Positions 8,675 to 50,153 of a DNA stretch of 64,000 nucleotides are shown piece after piece. Every line of letters starts with the position of its first letter. Positions within the stretch are counted from its first letter, which is position 1. A program made the position numbers and the translations under genes. Under the pieces are notes generated by a model. That model was not told where the DNA came from. It saw only the letters and a program-made list of their open reading frames with translations, and searched no databases. This stretch comes from Zancudomyces culisetae HAW-14-8. Lineage: Eukaryota; Fungi; Kickxellomycota. The DNA is taken from positions 1,860,001 through 1,924,000 of the forward strand of contig JBNJNM010000013.1 in NCBI GenBank assembly GCA_052426225.1. Direction: 5' to 3'.

Positions 8675-10405
8675 CTATTGCACTGGACGTGATCCAAGGT
8701 TAGCGTATCTTCTACACGCAGTTCCACTTGTGGGAGCAGTTGGAGTTTCTATGGTAGGCTCCAATGCAGAAGTTGCTTCCTGTGTTTCTACTGGGATAGG
8801 AGCAGCCTCTGTAGCATCAGTGATTGGTGGTTGAACGGTGTTCGTATCAATAACCTCAGAAAATGTTGATATGGTAGGCATCAGTGCTGTAGGAGGTATT
8901 GCGGTGGTTACCTCAGGTGTTAGTAGTGGTAGTGGAGCGCTTGATATCGGTGCTGGTTCAGGGGCTGGGGATGGGGCTGGAGCTGGAGCTGGGGATAGTT
9001 CAGGAGCTGGAGCTGGGGATGGTTCAGGAGCTGGAGCTGGGGATGGTTCAGGAGCTGGGGCTGGAGCTGGAGCTGGGGATGGTTCAGGGGCTGGAGCTGG
9101 AGCTGGGGATGGTTCAGGAGCTGGAGCTGGGGATGGTTCAGGGGCTGGAGCTGGGGATGGGGCTGGAGCTGGAGCTGGGGATGGTTCAGGGGCTGGAGCT
9201 GGGGATGGTTCAGGAGCTGGAGCTGGGGATGGTTCAGGAGCTGGAGCTGGGGATGGTTCAGGAGCTGGAGCTGGGGATGGTTCAGGAGCTGGAGCTGGGG
9301 ATGGTTCAGGAGCTGGGGCTGGAGCTGGAGCTGGGGATGATTCAGGAGCTGGGGCTGGAGCTGGAGCTGGGGATGATTCAGGAGCTGGGGCTGGAGCTGG
9401 AGCTGGGGATGATTCAGGGGCTGGAGCTGGGGATGGTTCAGGAGCTGGAGCTGGGGATGGTTCAGGAGCTGGAGCTGGGGATGGGGCTGGGGATGATTCA
9501 GGGGCTGGAGCTGGAGCTGGGGATGGTTCAGGAGCTGGAGCTGGGGATGGTTCAGGAGCTGGAGCTGGGGATGGTGATGCAGCTGGGGATGGTGATGGTT
9601 GAGGAGCTGGGGATGGAGTTGGAGTTGGAGTTGGAGTTGGAGTTGGAGTTGGAGTTGGAGTTGGAGTTGGAGTTGGAGTTGGAGTTGGAGTTGGAGTTGG
9701 AGTTGGAGTTGGAGTTGGAGTTGGAGTTGGAACGATTGCAGATGACATTGGGGGTATAGCGATCGCAGATGACGTTGGAGCTCTTGAAGTTATTGGAGTT
9801 GGAGTTGGAGCTCTTGAAGTCAGTGGAGTTGGAGCTCTTGAAGTCAGTGGAGTTGGAGCCCTTGAAGTTATTGGAGTTGGAGTCCTTGAAGTCAGTGGAG
9901 TTGATGATACTGTTGGGACTTGAGGAATTGCGGATGATGTTGGTGGCCTTGAAGCTGGAGCGTTAGGTGCAACCACTGTTGTTACTGTGTTACTGTTTTT
10001 ATAATTGTATCTAATGGTTTGACACTGTAAAAATAGTGATATGGCTGGCAAATCGCTGACAAACATAGCCTCAGGATTTGAGTTGTTTCCAGCTCCATAC
10101 CTACCAGCTTCCTGTGTCAAAGTGTATGGTTTACTATCACAAAGTACTTGATAGGCGTTGTAGTTGGAAAAAATAGGAACACTCTGGTTTGTGGATCGAG
10201 CTCTTATGTTGTTAAGAGAATTTTGAATTGTGTTATAATTCACGATCAATGTATTGAATGGCACATCCTGAGTTGGAAATGATGAGTAACCTTCTGGTGC
10301 CCAAACGTACTGTTGCAGACCACCATTGGGCAAAGATGCCATCAGTATGGCCTTTGGATCATCAAATCCTGTATATGTGCTAACGGTACCACCTATTGTT
10401 GACAT
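8675..10405 (-). CDS. Unknown family member 1: ~145-aa N-terminal domain plus TSRAPTP, (PT)n and (EPSPAPAP)n Pro-rich stalk (576 aa)
   Basis: Long ORF with AAAAATG start context, a TATA upstream and clear paralogs in the window. Confidence 0.85.
8955..9730 (-). repeat. Coding tandem repeats: EPSPAPAP-type array (~8955-9600) and hexamer ggagtt x~19 encoding (PT)n (9615-9730)
   Basis: Repeat units visible directly. Confidence 0.95.
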
Positions 10406-22982: not shown

Positions 22983-25900
22983 ATGATTAAACATGTTTTG
23001 GGGGCGTTGATGGTCACATCACTATGTTTAGCAAGAAGTAATGTAAATGTACACAATGATGGCTCCGCATATAACCAGCCTAAATGGCCCAGCGACTTTG
23101 CTGACCTATATGATCTCGATGATCGCGATATGGCTAGTAGTGATTCTACGAAATACACACTCAAAGCGCCGAAATTCGAAAGTTCAAAAGGTATAACAAT
23201 ACGAAACGGAAAATTTTTCCGGAGGGATATTTTTAAAAGCAAGCTTCAGAGTACCAACAAAAAAATTAAAAAATATAATGTAGTAAAAAACAATGTTAAT
23301 GTTAGAAACTACGAGCAAAAGTGTACTGGTATGGATTGCAAAATAAACTTTAGATTGAACTTACAAAACAGTGGAGGTAAGTTTACTGACCTTTCGACGG
23401 CTATGATTATGACACAAGCATATGGCACAACTACGGTACCTATTAGAAAAAAGGTTTCGAGTAATGACAGCAAAAAAACTTTAGCAGAGTCTGTGACTCC
23501 CGTAATAGCTAATAGAAATACTAGCAGTAAACCCCTAAACACAAATGTAATTAGAAAGTGCCGGAAGCTAAAAAAGATTGATGTGCATATTTCATGTAAC
23601 ATACGAGATACCTTGGTATGCTCCAATATTACACCAACAGCAGATACTGGTAGCCAAAATACATCGATATGTTCTTCAACAGAGAAAAGCAAAAAACCAA
23701 CATGTACTACTAGTATTACAGTTACTCGTACCACAACTACAACCACCTCAACTACTAATTTAAACAAAACAACACATACATGTACAAAAACTATGGAGAA
23801 AACCACATCTACCACTACAGTTACAAGTAAATGTCCTAGCTGGCTAACTTCAATAACCAGACCAACTAGACCAACTAGACCAACTAGACCAACTAGACCA
23901 ACAAGACCAACCAGACCAACCAGGCCAACAAGACCAACAAGACCAACTAGACCAACAAGACCAACCAGACCAACCAGGCCAACAAGACCAACAAGACCAA
24001 CAAGACCAACAAGACCAACAAGACCAACTAGACCAACAGGGCCAACAGGACCAACAGGACCAACAGTCTCGCCTTCTTCAACAACCAGAACCAGACCAAC
24101 CAGGCCAACAAGACCAACAAGACCAACAAGACCAACAAGACCAACAAGACCAACTAGACCAACTAGACCAACAAGACCAACTAGACCAACTAGACCAACT
24201 AGACCAACCAGACCAACCAGACCAACCAGACCAACAGGACCAACAGGGCCAACAGGGCCAACAGTCTCTCCTTCTTCAACAACCAGAACCAGACCAACCA
24301 GGCCAACCAGGCCAACCAGGCCAACCAGACCAACAGGACCAACAGGACCAACAGGACCAACTAGACCAACTAGACCAACTAGACCAACTAGACCAACTAG
24401 ACCAACAGGACCAACAGGACCAACAGTCTCGCCTTCTTCAACAACCAGAACCAGACCAACAAGACCAACCAGACCAACAGGACCAACAGGACCAACAGGA
24501 CCAACCAGACCAACCAGACCAACCAGACCAACCAGACCAACAAGACCAACAAGACCAACAAGACCAACTAGACCAACAAGACCAACTAGACCAACAAGAC
24601 CAACAAGAACAACTAGACCAACTAGACCAACTAGACCAACTAGACCAACTAGACCAACTAGACCAACTAGACCAACTAGACCAACAGGACCAACAGGACC
24701 AACAGGGCCAACAGTCTCGCCTTCTTCAACAACCAGAACCAGACCAACAAGACCAACCAGACCAACTAGACCAACAGGACCAACAGGACCAACAGGACCA
24801 ACAGGACCAACAGGGCCAACAGTCTCGCCTTCTTCAACAACCAGAACCAGACCAACTAGACCAACTAGACCAACTAGACCAACCAGACCAACCAGACCAA
24901 CCAGACCAACCAGGCCAACAAGACCAACAAGACCAACAAGACCAACAAGACCAACAAGACCAACTAGACCAACTAGACCAACTAGACCAACTAGACCAAC
25001 TAGACCAACAGGACCAACTAGACCAACAAGACCAACAAGACCAACTAGACCAACAAGACCAACAGGGCCAACAGTCTCGCCTTCTTCAACAACCAGAACC
25101 AGACCAACAAGACCAACCAGACCAACAGGACCAACAGGACCAACCAGACCAACAGGACCAACCAGACCAACCAGACCAACAGGACCAACAGGACCAACAG
25201 TCTCGCCTTCTTCAACAACCAGAACCAGACCAACTAGACCAACTAGACCAACTAGACCAACCAGGCCAACAAGACCAACAAGACCAACAAGACCAACAAG
25301 ACCAACTAGACCAACAAGACCAACTAGACCAACAAGACCAACAAGACCAACTAGGCCAACTAGACCAACTAGACCAACTAGACCAACTAGACCAACTAGA
25401 CCAACTAGACCAACTAGACCAACAGGACCAACAGGACCAACAGGGCCAACAGTCTCGCCTTCTTCAACAACCAGAACCAGACCAACAAGACCAACCAGAC
25501 CAACTAGACCAACAGGACCAACAGGGCCAACAGTCTCGCCTTCTTCAACAACCAGAACCAGACCAACTAGACCAACTAGACCAACTAGACCAACTAGACC
25601 AACTAGACCAACTAGACCAACAAGACCAACAGGGCCAACAGGACCAACAGGACCAACAGGGCCAACAGTCTCGCCTTCTTCAACAACCAGAACCAGACCA
25701 ACAAGACCAACCAGACCAACAGGACCAACAGGACCAACAGGGCCAACAGTCTCGCCTTCTTCAACAACCAGAACCAGACCAACTAGACCAACTAGACCAA
25801 CTAGACCAACCAGACCAACCAGACCAACCAGACCAACCAGGCCAACAAGACCAACAAGACCAACAAGACCAACAAGACCAACAAGACCAACAAGACCAAC

Positions 25901-27935
25901 AAGACCAACTAGACCAACTAGACCAACTAGACCAACAGGACCAACAGGACCAACAGGACCAACAGGGCCAACAGTCTCGCCTTCTTCAACAACCAGAACC
26001 AGACCAACTAGACCAACTAGACCAACTAGACCAACTAGACCAACTAGACCAACTAGACCAACTAGACCAACAGGACCAACAGGACCAACAGGGCCAACAG
26101 TCTCGCCTTCTTCAACAACCAGAACCAGACCAACAAGACCAACCAGACCAACAGGACCAACAGGACCAACAGGGCCAACAGTCTCGCCTTCTTCAACAAC
26201 CAGAACCAGACCAACAAGACCAACCAGACCAACAGGACCAACAGGACCAACAGGGCCAACAGTCTCGCCTTCTTCAACAACCAGAACCAGACCAACAAGA
26301 CCAACCAGACCAACAGGACCAACAGGACCAACCAGACCAACAGGACCAACAGGACCAACCAGACCAACCAGACCAACAGGACCAACAGGACCAACAGGGC
26401 CAACAGTCTCGCCTTCTTCAACAACCAGAACCAGACCAACAAGACCAACCAGACCAACAGGACCAACAGGACCAACCAGACCAACAGGACCAACAGGACC
26501 AACCAGACCAACCAGACCAACAGGACCAACAGGACCAACAGGACCAACAGGACCAACAGTCTCGCCTTCTTCAACAACCAGAACCAGACCAACCAGGCCA
26601 ACAAGACCAACAAGACCAACAAGACCAACAAGACCAACAAGACCAACAAGACCAACTAGACCAACTAGACCAACAAGACCAACCAGACCAACCAGACCAA
26701 CCAGACCAACAGGACCAACAGGACCAACAGGGCCAACAGTCTCGCCTTCTTCAACAACCAGAACCAGACCAACTAGACCAACTAGACCAACTAGACCAAC
26801 AAGACCAACAGGGCCAACAGGACCAACAGGACCAACAGTCTCGCCTTCTTCAACAACCAGAACCAGACCAACAAGACCAACAAGACCAACTAGACCAACA
26901 AGACCAACAAGACCAACCAGACCAACCAGACCAACCAGACCAACAGGACCAACAGGACCAACAGGGCCAACAGTCTCTCCTTCTTCAACAACCAGAACCA
27001 GACCAACCAGGCCAACCAGGCCAACCAGACCAACAGGACCAACAGGACCAACTAGACCAACAGGACCAACTAGACCAACAGGACCAACAGTCTCGCCTTC
27101 TTCAACCAGAACAAGACCAACCATTCCAACAGAGCCAACAGAATCACCTTGTTCATCATCCAGAACAAGACCAACTAGACCAACTAGACCAACAGTCTCA
27201 CCTTCTTCAACAACCAGAACAGGATCAACCATTCCAACAGGGCCAACAGAATTACCTTGTTCATCGTCCAAAACAAGACCAACCATTCCAACAGGGCCAA
27301 CAGAATCACCTTGTTCATCATCCAAAACAAGACCAACTAGACCACCTTGTTCAACATCAAAAACAAGAACAAGAACAAAATCTTCTTCGAAAACCAGAAC
27401 AAGGCCAACAAGACCACACATAAGTAACACTTCAACTGCGCCAACAATTCCATGTATTTCCTCATCAACTAGAACAAGCACACCATGTGGAGGAAAAACA
27501 AGCATTTCGATTCCTTCCACACTATCTTGCGAAAGAACACCGGCCTTTACATCGCAATATACATTCGTTACTGTAATCAAACATCCCAAGCCATGCGAAA
27601 GTCACAAAAATAGCATGTCTGCCACCACTGATCTTCGCGACATATCATTAACTACCATGCCTACTCAAACATCAGAGAATTTCATTAGCTACACAAGGGT
27701 AGTCGATATTGATACATCAAGAGGAAATAATAAAGACTCGGGTTACATTGAAGTTCCAACGGAATACGATTCAGGTAGTTATTATAGCAGGTTTACCAGT
27801 AACACGACTACACAGGCAACTGCTACCCATGTACAACAAACAAGTAGTGTTAAATACTTTTGTAAATGTAACTGCAAGTGTTACAAATGTGCTGATAAAC
27901 CGACTTCTGTTAGTAACTGCTCAACTCAAAAATAG
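22983..27935 (+). CDS. Secreted 1650-aa protein with a giant (RPT)n/(GPT)m repeat array and Cys-containing termini
   Basis: Signal peptide [17 protein letters not shown]; uninterrupted 4.95-kb ORF; variation within the repeat is mostly synonymous (act/acc/aca, aga/agg, gga/ggg), supporting this frame. Confidence 0.9.
23856..27420 (+). repeat. Hierarchical minisatellite: 9-bp units (agaccaacH / ggRccaaca) punctuated ~22 times by a 27-bp VSPSSTTRT spacer; degenerate after ~27110
   Basis: Directly visible. Confidence 0.97.
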
Positions 27936-48701: not shown

Positions 48702-50153
48702 ATGAAGACACGAAGACAAAAGAGAACAGAAAATTTGGGAGAAAAGTTAAGTGAAAACGAAAACGAAAACACTAACGAAAATGAAAATGAAAATGAAAAT
48801 GCAGACGAAAATGAAATCGAAATCGAAAATGCACCTCAAGACCAAAGGCAAATCCAAATGCATGAGGTTGGTAAATTGAATAATTTGCAAAATGAAGCGA
48901 CAATAAATAGGCCGAATCCTACAGTGGAGGAGAACAGCGAAGAATCCGTAAATATAAAACCGGGTAGCAAAAGGGTAACAGTTCAGAGGAATAAAGGGGG
49001 TGTGGTTAAAGTTGGAGCTGAGAAAAGTATTCGAAGGCGTAAAAAATCCGACAAAGTTGTGGATACAAACACAAATGATAATACAAATAAGAGTGGAGAA
49101 GAGGAACAAGAAAGTTTGGATATAGCATCGAAGAAGGGTCAGGTGAAAAAACCACGAAAACGGGTAAATAAAGAGGGAGAGGGAGTGAAAAAGGGAGTGA
49201 AAAAGGGAGTGAAAAAGGGAGTGAAAAAGGGAAAGGATGTGGGAAAGAAGGAGATGAATGAAGAGGATGTGGTGGTGGTATTTGGTCCTGAATTGGCAGA
49301 ACCAACTGGTGAACCATCCAAAAGCACAGTGCCTAAAGGTCGAAAGTCAAAACCAGCGGTTAAATCAAAGGTAAAAGTTACAGACACGGATAAAAGTGTG
49401 GATACATTATCCACCACACAACCAGAAGGAGAGGGTAACGATACAGGATTGAGTAAAAAAAGAAAAGTGAGTGTGGCAGGGAAAGCAAGGAAAAAGACAA
49501 AGACAAAGACAGATTATCAAGAAATAGCTATTGAGCAGGGAGAATTCATACAGGAGCAATTGTTAGCGATGTATAAACAGAGGCTTCCTGGATGTTTTAA
49601 CAGTAGCAGTCGAGCTGAGGTTGAAGGAGGAGTGACGGAGAATGTAGAGAAAGAGAAAGGGAAAGAGAAAGAGAAAGGGGGGACGGGAGGAGAAAGAGGA
49701 AGAGGAGGAGGAAGAGGAAGAGGAAGAGGAAGAGGAAGAGAACGAGGACGAGGAGGAGGAAGAGGAGGGAAAAAGTTGGTATGTGGGAGGGAGAATGTAC
49801 AATTTATAAAGAGTGTTTATGAGAGGGGGAGCAATGGTAATAATGAAAGTGATGGGATTGAAAGTCTTAACCAAGAGGCGATAATACAAAATGAAGCGAT
49901 GAAAAAGGCACTGTTTGCAGAACATGTGACAGATTTAGAAAAGTCAGATTGGTATCCAGAGTTTATAAATGTTTTAAAGTGGGCATTTGAAACGAATGCA
50001 CAGGAAAATAGTAATAATAATAATAATAGTAATAATAATAATAGTGGTGATGGTGGTATAAATCAAGAGAGACCAATCATAAGTGATAAAGTTAGAGAAA
50101 AAATGATCAAGAGTTTTATTAACATCAACAAAATCATCAAAAAGAAAAAATAA
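48702..50153 (+). CDS. Hypothetical Lys/Glu-rich low-complexity protein with RG repeat, probably nuclear (483 aa)
   Basis: Long ORF; basic NLS-like clusters, (KKGV)4, GRGRGRG tract and short helical C-terminal region; no family recognised. Confidence 0.75.
   Translation: MKTRRQKRTENLGEKLSENENENTNENENENENADENEIEIENAPQDQRQIQMHEVGKLNNLQNEATINRPNPTVEENSEESVNIKPGSKRVTVQRNKGGVVKVGAEKSIRRRKKSDKVVDTNTNDNTNKSGEEEQESLDIASKKGQVKKPRKRVNKEGEGVKKGVKKGVKKGVKKGKDVGKKEMNEEDVVVVFGPELAEPTGEPSKSTVPKGRKSKPAVKSKVKVTDTDKSVDTLSTTQPEGEGNDTGLSKKRKVSVAGKARKKTKTKTDYQEIAIEQGEFIQEQLLAMYKQRLPGCFNSSSRAEVEGGVTENVEKEKGKEKEKGGTGGERGRGGGRGRGRGRGRERGRGGGRGGKKLVCGRENVQFIKSVYERGSNGNNESDGIESLNQEAIIQNEAMKKALFAEHVTDLEKSDWYPEFINVLKWAFETNAQENSNNNNNSNNNNSGDGGINQERPIISDKVREKMIKSFININKIIKKKK

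Follow-up and report, generated by a model that had tools for sequence, protein, structure and literature searches.

The Balbiani-ring proteins of Chironomus show a constant block in alternation with tripeptide subrepeats, each 9 bp long in the DNA. Their genes appear as “hierarchically repetitive” in the reference list of PMC2114959. Another dipteran protein, Sgs3 of the Drosophila salivary gland, is a proven bioadhesive, with Cys-bearing ends and charges that are thought, respectively, to cross-link the threads and to keep them extended (PMC6352337). Sgs3 paralogues carry KPT arrays (about 23–65 copies, found in D. pseudoobscura and D. eugracilis) or arrays of PTR, PTE, and PTV (about 71, 42, and 22 copies, found in D. 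ananassae Sgs3b) (PMC6352337).

We analyzed a 64,000-nucleotide stretch of fungal DNA (the window) that contains a gene with a long array of Arg-Pro-Thr tripeptides (the RPT-array gene). The first-pass annotation had tied a role in attachment to the condition that the organism be an insect-gut fungus. The window also encodes an isocitrate lyase that is 100% identical to a protein of Zancudomyces culisetae (Harpellales), a symbiont of the mosquito-larva hindgut, and the organism thus is such a fungus. A Mucoralean affinity was rejected, CotH being absent.

Anatomy of the RPT-array gene

The gene and its parts occupy the following positions of the window:

22983..27935, + strand: complete coding sequence without introns (ATG start, 1,650 codons, and stop)
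22983..23033, + strand: signal-peptide-like N terminus (aa 1–17; likely cleavage after Ala17; heuristic call from hydropathy and the −3/−1 rule)
23034..23858, + strand: basic N region (aa 18–292; pI 9.8, 9 Cys, 5 N-glycosylation sequons, Thr-rich last 60 aa)
23859..27089, + strand: tripeptide array (aa 293–1369, 1,077 aa; 299 nonamer units, 21 higher-order units)
27090..27422, + strand: degenerate older units (aa 1370–1480; [12 protein letters not shown] plus spacer variants, 4 Cys; TRF period 54)
27423..27932, + strand: non-repeat C region (aa 1481–1650; 10 Cys, pI 8.7, without hydrophobic tail)
27861..27890, + strand: [10 protein letters not shown] cluster (aa 1627–1636)
23309..27589, − strand: antisense ORF of 1,426 aa (TTG start; spans the array and its edges only)

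Frame +1 is the sole frame open across both non-repeat flanks, the other frames carrying 2–34 stops. The antisense ORF is open because the repeat is stop-free, and we rejected it as a gene, the minus frames being closed in the flanks. The predicted N terminus consists of K3/H4, a 13-residue hydrophobic core (aa 5–17), and small residues at −3/−1 (C-L-A, followed by Arg), features that by this heuristic call bear out the proposed signal peptide. Hydropathy revealed no other hydrophobic segment in the 1,650-aa protein, neither a transmembrane segment nor a hydrophobic C-tail of the GPI type.

The basic, Cys-containing N region of ∼290 residues and the acid-free tripeptide repeat of ∼1,080 residues were both found as first annotated. 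The array is built from 216 RPT, 1 RTT, and 82 GPT units, with 20 VSPSSTTRT spacers between the higher-order units, and uses only the residues T, P, R, G, S, and V; Thr makes up 33% of its 1,077 aa, Pro 30%, and Ser 6%. It lacks D, E, and K as well as F, Y, W, L, and M, and the stretch without any D or E reaches from aa 273 to 1383. Arg occurs 237 times and precedes Pro in 216 cases, so that trypsin-type sites of the array are limited to the Arg-Thr bond in each of the 20 spacers and to the single RTT unit.

The first annotation had also described a polar order of units. A terminal GPT ahead of the next spacer is indeed strict (21/21 higher-order units), but “RPT then GPT” inside the units is only a tendency, because 8 of the 21 show more than one RPT-to-GPT alternation. 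This polar RPT-GPT-spacer order is a plain outcome of block duplication from one ancestral unit. Eighteen of the 20 spacers are an identical 27-mer, and the longest exact repeat inside the array measures 178 bp; the near-identity of the spacers indicates that the array is either young or homogenized. Variation among the 299 units is confined to two synonymous third positions, the first base that distinguishes Arg from Gly, and one Pro-to-Thr change. As such variants spread by duplication, the synonymous-only variation reflects few independent mutations.

The mature protein contains 23 Cys, all of which belong either to the termini or to the degenerate units at the 3′ end; some spacer variants in the latter carry Cys and Glu (ESPCSSSKT type). 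The annotated C-terminal cluster lies near the end of the protein but does not form it, 14 residues following aa 1636. Single-sequence AF2 models of the N and C regions reached pLDDT values of 35.5 and 32.6, respectively; with flank models of such low confidence, cross-linking domains are proposed from the cysteines alone.

Relatives and other XPT arrays

The RPT-array gene is single-copy and lineage-restricted in Z. culisetae. All 156 forward-strand matches to (RPT)3 in the 27-Mb genome lie within it, and no paralogues were found in the genome. The N region has no relatives among the proteins of 907–2,887 aa in a set of 5.8 billion, none of any length among 1.84 billion representatives, and none in the JGI metagenomes; the C region has none among proteins of 907–2,887 aa. 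Neither flank matches a Pfam family at E ≤ 0.1 or, significantly, a PDB sequence (E ∼ 0.2, noise). The spacer 27-mer has no match in metagenome contigs, look-ups found no gene on record for the exact product of the ORF, and a search for the string RPTRPTRPT in 8.4 million papers returned no match. A feature search (Atlas) with the C region gave a sole match, the mucin-like viral glycoprotein G of RSV (0.77), which is compositional.

With no known orthologue, conservation gives no argument for function. As no sequence relatives exist for the N region in these sets, or for the C region among proteins of 907–2,887 aa, convergence fits better than transfer, in line with the first annotation, and transfer from the dipteran host was rejected, similarity being found to nothing.

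Further secreted proteins with X-Pro-Thr (XPT) arrays are encoded in the genome, comprising (GPTSPT)n in a protein of 920 aa, (DPT)∼85 in one of 511 aa, and runs of KPT and APT. Like the RPT-array protein, they keep the X-Pro-Thr register, prefer the codons CCA-ACA/ACT, and possess a signal peptide, and the (GPTSPT)n protein is likewise punctuated into higher-order units, whereas the flanks are unrelated. In these other secreted proteins, XPT runs act as stalks or interdomain linkers, and paralogues swap KPT or SPTGPT at one position. The RPT array is the only one with Arg, and the longest and only strongly cationic one among the XPT arrays examined; it is one extreme of an XPT linker/stalk theme that is common in this genome. 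Many other secreted low-complexity proteins are also encoded, which weakens any specific assignment.

Comparison with described secreted proteins

The likeness to Sgs3 is closer than first claimed, given the Sgs3 paralogues with KPT and PTR arrays (PMC6352337). RPT is PTR in another register, so the repeat type is common to both proteins. Both combine a signal peptide, a long O-glycosylatable basic-Pro-Thr tripeptide array whose copy number varies quickly, and Cys-bearing ends. In contrast to the Sgs proteins, in which Thr/Pro-rich repeats with Lys or Arg at regular intervals follow almost directly after the signal peptide, the RPT-array protein has 275 non-repeat residues in between, and its gene lacks the phase-1 intron in the signal peptide known from the Sgs1/3/7/8 family (PMC6352337). 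Its C region is roughly 280 aa long, compared with about 50 aa for the conserved Cys-rich C terminus that Sgs3 has in common with Sgs7 and Sgs8. The C region gave no Pfam match and no relatives among proteins of 907–2,887 aa, a range that lies above Sgs3 itself (about 200–600 aa). The fungal protein is 3–8 times longer than its insect counterpart, to which it is unrelated in sequence, and its array has no acidic units, whereas D. ananassae Sgs3b mixes PTR with PTE.

With gel-forming and other secreted mucins, the RPT-array protein shares central Pro/Thr/Ser tandem repeats between Cys-containing termini, and dense O-glycosylation and an extended chain are expected for both. Its backbone is strongly cationic, unlike the neutral backbone of mucins; O-mannose in fungi carries no charge unless it is phosphorylated. 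A gel-forming mucin proper was rejected, because no VWD, C8, TIL, or cystine-knot domain is present (no Pfam match at E ≤ 0.1). Judged by array composition and the predicted signal peptide, the protein is a mucin-like (PTS-repeat) secreted protein in the broad operational sense.

Hierarchical repeats, secretion, and an aquatic dipteran setting link the RPT-array protein to the Balbiani-ring proteins. The latter, however, have Cys-bearing constant regions of ∼30 residues and subrepeats that mix basic and acidic residues, whereas the 9-residue spacer of the RPT array contains neither Cys nor acidic residues. No sequence similarity to Balbiani-ring proteins was found for the N region (any length) or for the C region (proteins of 907–2,887 aa). 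A fungal GPI-anchored adhesin of the Als/Flo/Epa type was rejected as well, for there is no hydrophobic C-tail and no Pfam domain, and the N-region model is unfolded.

Possible roles of the array

We consider the product to be most likely (probability about 60%) a secreted mucin-like glycoprotein with an extended polycationic XPT stalk of ∼1,080 residues that serves the fungal surface, be it the holdfast, the hyphal wall, or the trichospore appendage, as an adhesive or as a matrix polymer. The signal peptide would route the protein via the ER and Golgi, where the ∼420 Ser/Thr of the array may become O-mannosylated; this predicted modification is plausible, eight loci for PMT O-mannosyltransferases being present in the genome. 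Pro at every third residue and charge repulsion would keep the chain extended, with a contour length of ∼0.33 micrometre if the array takes polyproline-II geometry. The Cys of the termini and degenerate units could form disulfide links to the protein itself or to other surface proteins, and the ∼237 guanidinium charges would bind anionic partners, either surfaces or polymers (e.g. gut cuticle, polyanions of the wall, or bacteria).

Trypsin does not cut Arg-Pro bonds, and because 216 of its 237 Arg sit before Pro, the array suits a trypsin-rich gut and is predicted to be intrinsically trypsin-resistant. Its chemistry also fits the habitat in that Arg, present without Lys, stays charged at the pH of ∼10–11 that prevails in the larval anterior midgut (PMC12616018). 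The proposed glue-type build holds, with signal-peptide features, a P/T/S-rich repeat array, and Cys-bearing ends, and a putative holdfast or appendage role is plausible. The proposed silk or fibre gained no support, as no fold and no β-forming or crystalline motif was found, and Thr phosphorylation likewise gained none, no Fam20C-type kinase having been found in a search run without a positive control.

The same array could instead be a non-adhesive stalk of the wall or coat, that is, a hydrated, protease-resistant glycoprotein brush on the thallus or spore that acts in the gut as a spacer, lubricant, or shield, with a charge that is incidental or serves wall assembly. This would agree with XPT runs being plain linkers in other secreted proteins (e.g. 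KPT or SPTGPT in the paralogues), with the protease resistance of Arg-Pro, and with the lack of chymotrypsin-type residues. Yet an array of 1,077 residues that carries 237 Arg without any counter-charge far exceeds a linker, and neither Pfam nor AF2 detected globular domains to connect, so that we regard such a stalk as unlikely. A component of the holdfast glue would be a spore-stored polycation, released at extrusion and paired with (DPT)n or another polyanion through complex coacervation. The sporangiospore of Z. culisetae secretes its holdfast substance within 90 s of a potassium/pH shift (PMC13062954), a fasciclin-domain protein is the sole glue candidate proposed in the genomic literature consulted (PMC5954228), and it is well established that polymers of opposite charge can form coacervate glues (PMC11730373, PMC6982270); moreover, the genome encodes the secreted (DPT)∼85 protein. 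However, the two genes are unlinked (RPT on contig C13, DPT on contig C11 at 2762702–2764237) and share no flank homology, and the charges are unequal (about +237 versus about −85), which leaves this role distinctly unlikely. We rate as quite improbable a holdfast glue of the Harpellales that is made of two halves, the (RPT)n polycation and the (DPT)∼85 polyanion from its unlinked gene. Both would be packed into the sporangiospore, to be freed by the potassium/pH shift during gut passage, after which the complex coacervate would wet the hindgut cuticle and then set on it in seconds. The model for this is sandcastle-worm cement, to which the likeness, by pure analogy, lies in separate, oppositely charged secreted polyelectrolytes and in an organism that sets an underwater glue within seconds of an ionic or pH change; DOPA and phosphoserine are absent from the RPT/DPT pair, in contrast to the cement.

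Proline-rich antimicrobial peptides (PrAMPs) contain Pro-Arg-Pro motifs, are short (<40 aa), and are cut from their precursors at defined sites. A precursor of antibacterial or microbiota-shaping Pro/Arg-rich peptides would be cut by host trypsin at the spacer Arg-Thr bonds, which together with the one RTT are the only sites on offer, into ∼22 cationic fragments of 27–84 residues. Some known antibacterial peptides are rich in Pro and Arg and carry O-glycosylated Thr (PMC11678341, PMC10449632), and the gut microbiota shifts upon colonization with this fungus (PMC7393158). Nevertheless, we rejected membership among the PrAMP precursors, because the defining Pro-Arg-Pro is absent, the array reading P-T-R-P, and the only dibasic site is the RR at aa 80–81 in the N region. 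Because neither Kex2 nor dipeptidyl processing sites separate the units, because the fragments would be far longer than known PrAMPs, and because dense O-mannosylation would probably block the spacer site, a peptide precursor is very unlikely. A young, unexpressed, or functionless ORF, in which a recently expanded coding microsatellite happens to stand open in an orphan gene, would account for the near-identical spacers, the predicted disorder of both flanks, and the failure to find relatives (for the N region, and for the C region within the range of 907–2,887 aa), the N region occurring in no recorded protein even though collections do contain other proteins of Z. culisetae. This reading is nonetheless highly improbable, as ∼570 non-repeat codons stand open in one frame around an array of 3.2 kb, against 2–34 stops in the other frames, a proper (heuristically called) signal peptide is present, and the length changes of the array are all multiples of 9 nt. 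Short-read assemblies break or collapse such arrays, but the genome matches a 48x PacBio-HiFi assembly (PMC12611240), which makes an assembly artefact unlikely; as both the 3.2-kb array and its 178-bp longest exact repeat are far below HiFi read length and the reading frame runs unbroken through the array, the chance of a collapsed or inflated repeat is practically negligible.

Even as an ordinary wall stalk, the protein would document that an early-diverging fungus has a linker “grammar” of XPT units, with R, G, S, A, D, or K as X. Judged by its sequence, the gene shows a basic-Pro-Thr tripeptide design that appears to have been reached independently of Drosophila Sgs3, in a fungus living inside dipteran larvae. 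If the pairing of RPT and DPT proteins were true, it would be a fungal glycoprotein counterpart of sandcastle-worm cement that survives pH 10–11 and trypsin. The adhesive by which trichomycetes fix themselves to the hindgut lining within 90 seconds has so far been described by microscopy alone; the RPT-array gene is a concrete, chemically unusual candidate for this attachment glue, and the complementary acidic XPT protein in the same genome makes the glue question directly testable.

Reading frame and array of the RPT gene

The RPT gene consists of a single open frame for a predicted secreted protein and is organized as follows:

Window 22983–27935 (+): RPT ORF, 1,650 codons, uninterrupted
aa 1–17 (+): signal-peptide-like start with K3/H4 followed by a hydrophobic core of 13 residues, with C-L-A ahead of the likely cut
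aa 19–292 (+): basic N region (pI 9.8), 9 Cys, 5 N-glycosylation sequons, single dibasic RR at aa 80–81
aa 293–1369 (+): tripeptide array
aa 1370–1480 (+): degenerate units
aa 1481–1650 (+): Cys-rich tail, 10 Cys

This intact frame and the array anatomy confirm what the first-pass annotation had observed. In the non-repeat flanks (292 and 281 codons), frame +1 alone is open, with 2–34 stops in each of the other five frames, and every length change in the array is a multiple of nine bases. An antisense ORF of 1,426 amino acids has a TTG start and lies wholly in the stop-free repeat; it was regarded as an artefact. The gene is single copy: searches of the own genome (27.09 Mb, 25 contigs) with the N region, with the C region, and with repeat DNA lead to this locus alone, and a degenerate (RPT)3 pattern gives 156 forward-strand matches across the 27 Mb, all of them inside the gene. 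The published HAW-14-8 assembly is based on PacBio-HiFi reads (27.18 Mb, 26 contigs, 48x, largest contig 5,239,357 bp; PMC12611240). An assembly artefact is unlikely, because the 3.2-kb array is much shorter than HiFi reads.

The predicted mature protein has ∼177 kDa (unglycosylated) and a pI of ∼12, with 318 Lys and Arg versus 36 Asp and Glu. The tail contains a 10-residue cluster at aa 1627–1636, and the protein ends 14 residues further on. Because this C terminus is polar, no GPI signal was found, which argues against a GPI-anchored adhesin, and outside the signal-peptide-like start the hydrophobicity is too low everywhere for a membrane span. The first ∼62 mature residues (aa 18–81, window 23034–23225) carry 9 of the 20 acidic residues of the N region. 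This acidic stretch, which terminates at the only dibasic site of the protein, may be a propeptide removed by Kex2.

The array comprises 21 higher-order units, each starting with RPT and ending with GPT, with 20 VSPSSTTRT spacers between them. The rule proposed earlier, that GPT stands ahead of every spacer, holds in 21/21 cases, and in eight of the units the RPT-to-GPT alternation occurs more than once. Its 1,077 residues use six amino acids in all; Asp, Glu, and Lys are absent. The 299 nonamers (216 RPT, 1 RTT, and 82 GPT) represent only 11 DNA types and vary at four positions: position 1 (A/G) decides between Arg and Gly, changes at positions 3 and 9 are synonymous, and position 4 shows one C-to-A change. 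This pattern fits selection on the peptide, though weakly, since independent mutations are few where duplication spreads the variants. An identical 27-mer is found in 18 of the 20 spacers, multi-unit blocks recur whole, and the longest exact internal repeat spans 178 bp; the array is therefore young or homogenised by unequal exchange.

The RPT-GPT-spacer polarity is the expected product of block duplication from one founder unit. The degenerate 3′ units read RPT-IPT-GPT followed by ESPCSSSKT-type spacers, and the founder likely resembled them. Judged by sequence, the amplified VSPSSTTRT spacer would be an ESPCSSSKT-type version without Cys and acidic residues.

Relatives, analogues, and genomic setting

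No relatives of the N region were found among proteins of 907–2,887 amino acids, among 1.84 billion representatives of all lengths, or in metagenomes, and none of the C region within proteins of 907–2,887 amino acids, the length range covered. These results favor convergence over transfer, as had been proposed. Pfam and PDB searches of the flanks gave no match, and AlphaFold models made from single sequences show neither flank folded (pLDDT 35.5 for N and 32.6 for C). The same collections do contain other Z. culisetae proteins, so that the searched public proteome apparently never included a model of the RPT gene.

The closest functional analogue is Drosophila Sgs3 glue. Sgs3 paralogues carry KPT arrays of ∼23, 33, and 65 copies, and a D. 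ananassae paralogue carries PTR, PTE, and PTV arrays of ∼71, 42, and 22 copies; the Cys-rich ends are thought to cross-link threads and the charges to hold them extended (PMC6352337). The RPT protein shares the basic-Pro-Thr arrays and Cys-bearing ends, in line with the glue-like architecture suggested before. In contrast to the Sgs3 family, whose members are defined by a phase-1 intron in the signal peptide, the RPT gene lacks this intron, and its long flanks showed no relatives in the ranges searched, so that it was not assigned to the family. Membership tests for gel-forming mucins (with blank Pfam searches), Balbiani-ring proteins, and PrAMP precursors were likewise negative. We file the protein, by its sequence, as a putative cationic X-Pro-Thr (XPT) mucin-like secreted protein.

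The neighbors in the window are fungal housekeeping genes (Fun30-type SNF2 helicase, Nro1, HMG-CoA reductase with sterol-sensing domain, Ehd3-type hydratase, isocitrate lyase, ZIP transporter, and Dus). A Zancudomyces culisetae protein matches the isocitrate lyase ORF at 100% identity, followed by Furculomyces (75%) and Smittium (70%), which bears out an insect-gut fungus as host. Two further ORFs, at window 8675–10405 (−; 576 amino acids) and 48702–50153 (+; 483 amino acids), have no Pfam match and contain internal simple or 24-bp tandem repeats.

Other XPT arrays and modification enzymes

XPT runs recur in the genome, where a four-unit PT-X pattern gives 1,001 matches versus 256 for the control; APT runs are also present. 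The loci examined are listed here with the PMT-family O-mannosyltransferase examples:

G000:C6:44362–47124 = L024:4362–7124 (−): (GPTSPT)n protein, 920 aa, secreted
G000:C11:2762702–2764237 = L035:4702–6237 (+): DPT protein, 511 aa, hydrophobic N terminus
G000:C14:85195–86676 = L036:3195–4676 (+): KPT-linker paralogue
G000:C14:114370–115851 = L037:3370–4851 (−): KPT-linker paralogue
C21:2058450–2059181, C21:2111773–2112504, and C11:4841913–4842650: PMT loci

The (GPTSPT)n array, which carries no charge, is broken up by STGPT/SPTSPT units in a hierarchical style like that of the RPT gene. The strongly acidic DPT protein has ∼85 Asp-Pro-Thr units without interruption, flanked by a basic N region of ∼150 amino acids with RRR/KR sites and a tail rich in Tyr that contains a CC pair. 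The genome has no other (D/E)PT array, as all 64 pattern matches fall at this locus; in charge, the DPT array mirrors the RPT array on the acidic side. The KPT-linker paralogues on contig C14 are near-identical, secreted two-domain proteins of 493 amino acids, inverted with ∼29 kb between them, and differ in linker copy number (5 versus 9). On contig C6, a third paralogue (L025:2691–3938) has the SPTGPT-type linker SPTGPTSPTGPT in the equivalent position. The RPT, DPT, and GPTSPT proteins have flanks that are unrelated to one another. XPT runs thus recur as a general stalk/linker theme, and among them the RPT gene is the cationic extreme and the longest of those examined.

Eight PMT loci are present (open frames of 704–869 amino acids), which is many for a filamentous fungus. 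The two on C21, in opposite orientation with 53 kb between them, may be a recent duplicate. A Fam20C-type secretory kinase was not found in the genome in a search that had no positive control, leaving the proposed Thr phosphorylation unsupported.

Proposed working of the RPT protein

Most likely, the protein is secreted, densely O-mannosylated, and remains extended. A polyproline-II helix rises 3.1 Å per residue, so that the array in this conformation would span ∼330 nm. The 23 Cys of the mature protein, an odd number and all terminal, could join molecules to one another, and the 237 Arg of the array would pack positive charge very densely, allowing the protein to bind an anionic surface or polymer.

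Arg directly precedes Pro in 216 of the 237 cases, and Arg-Pro bonds are not cleaved by trypsin. The only trypsin-type sites in the array are the spacer Arg-Thr bonds and the one RTT unit. This pairing and the absence of Phe, Tyr, Trp, Leu, and Met from the array fit a gut habitat. Arg is also the only basic residue in the array, all 49 Lys of the protein being located in the flanks. In larval mosquitoes, the anterior midgut has a pH of ∼10–11 (PMC12616018), and the Arg-only array fits such an alkaline habitat because Arg is still protonated there.

The first-pass interpretation stands in part: host, glue-like architecture, and convergence are retained, whereas silk and phosphorylation are unsupported, as is any specific site of action (holdfast, appendage, or other). 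[quoted passage not shown] Oppositely charged polymers can form coacervates (PMC11730373, PMC6982270). By its chemistry, the RPT protein would be an attractive holdfast candidate, possibly forming a coacervate with the DPT polyanion.
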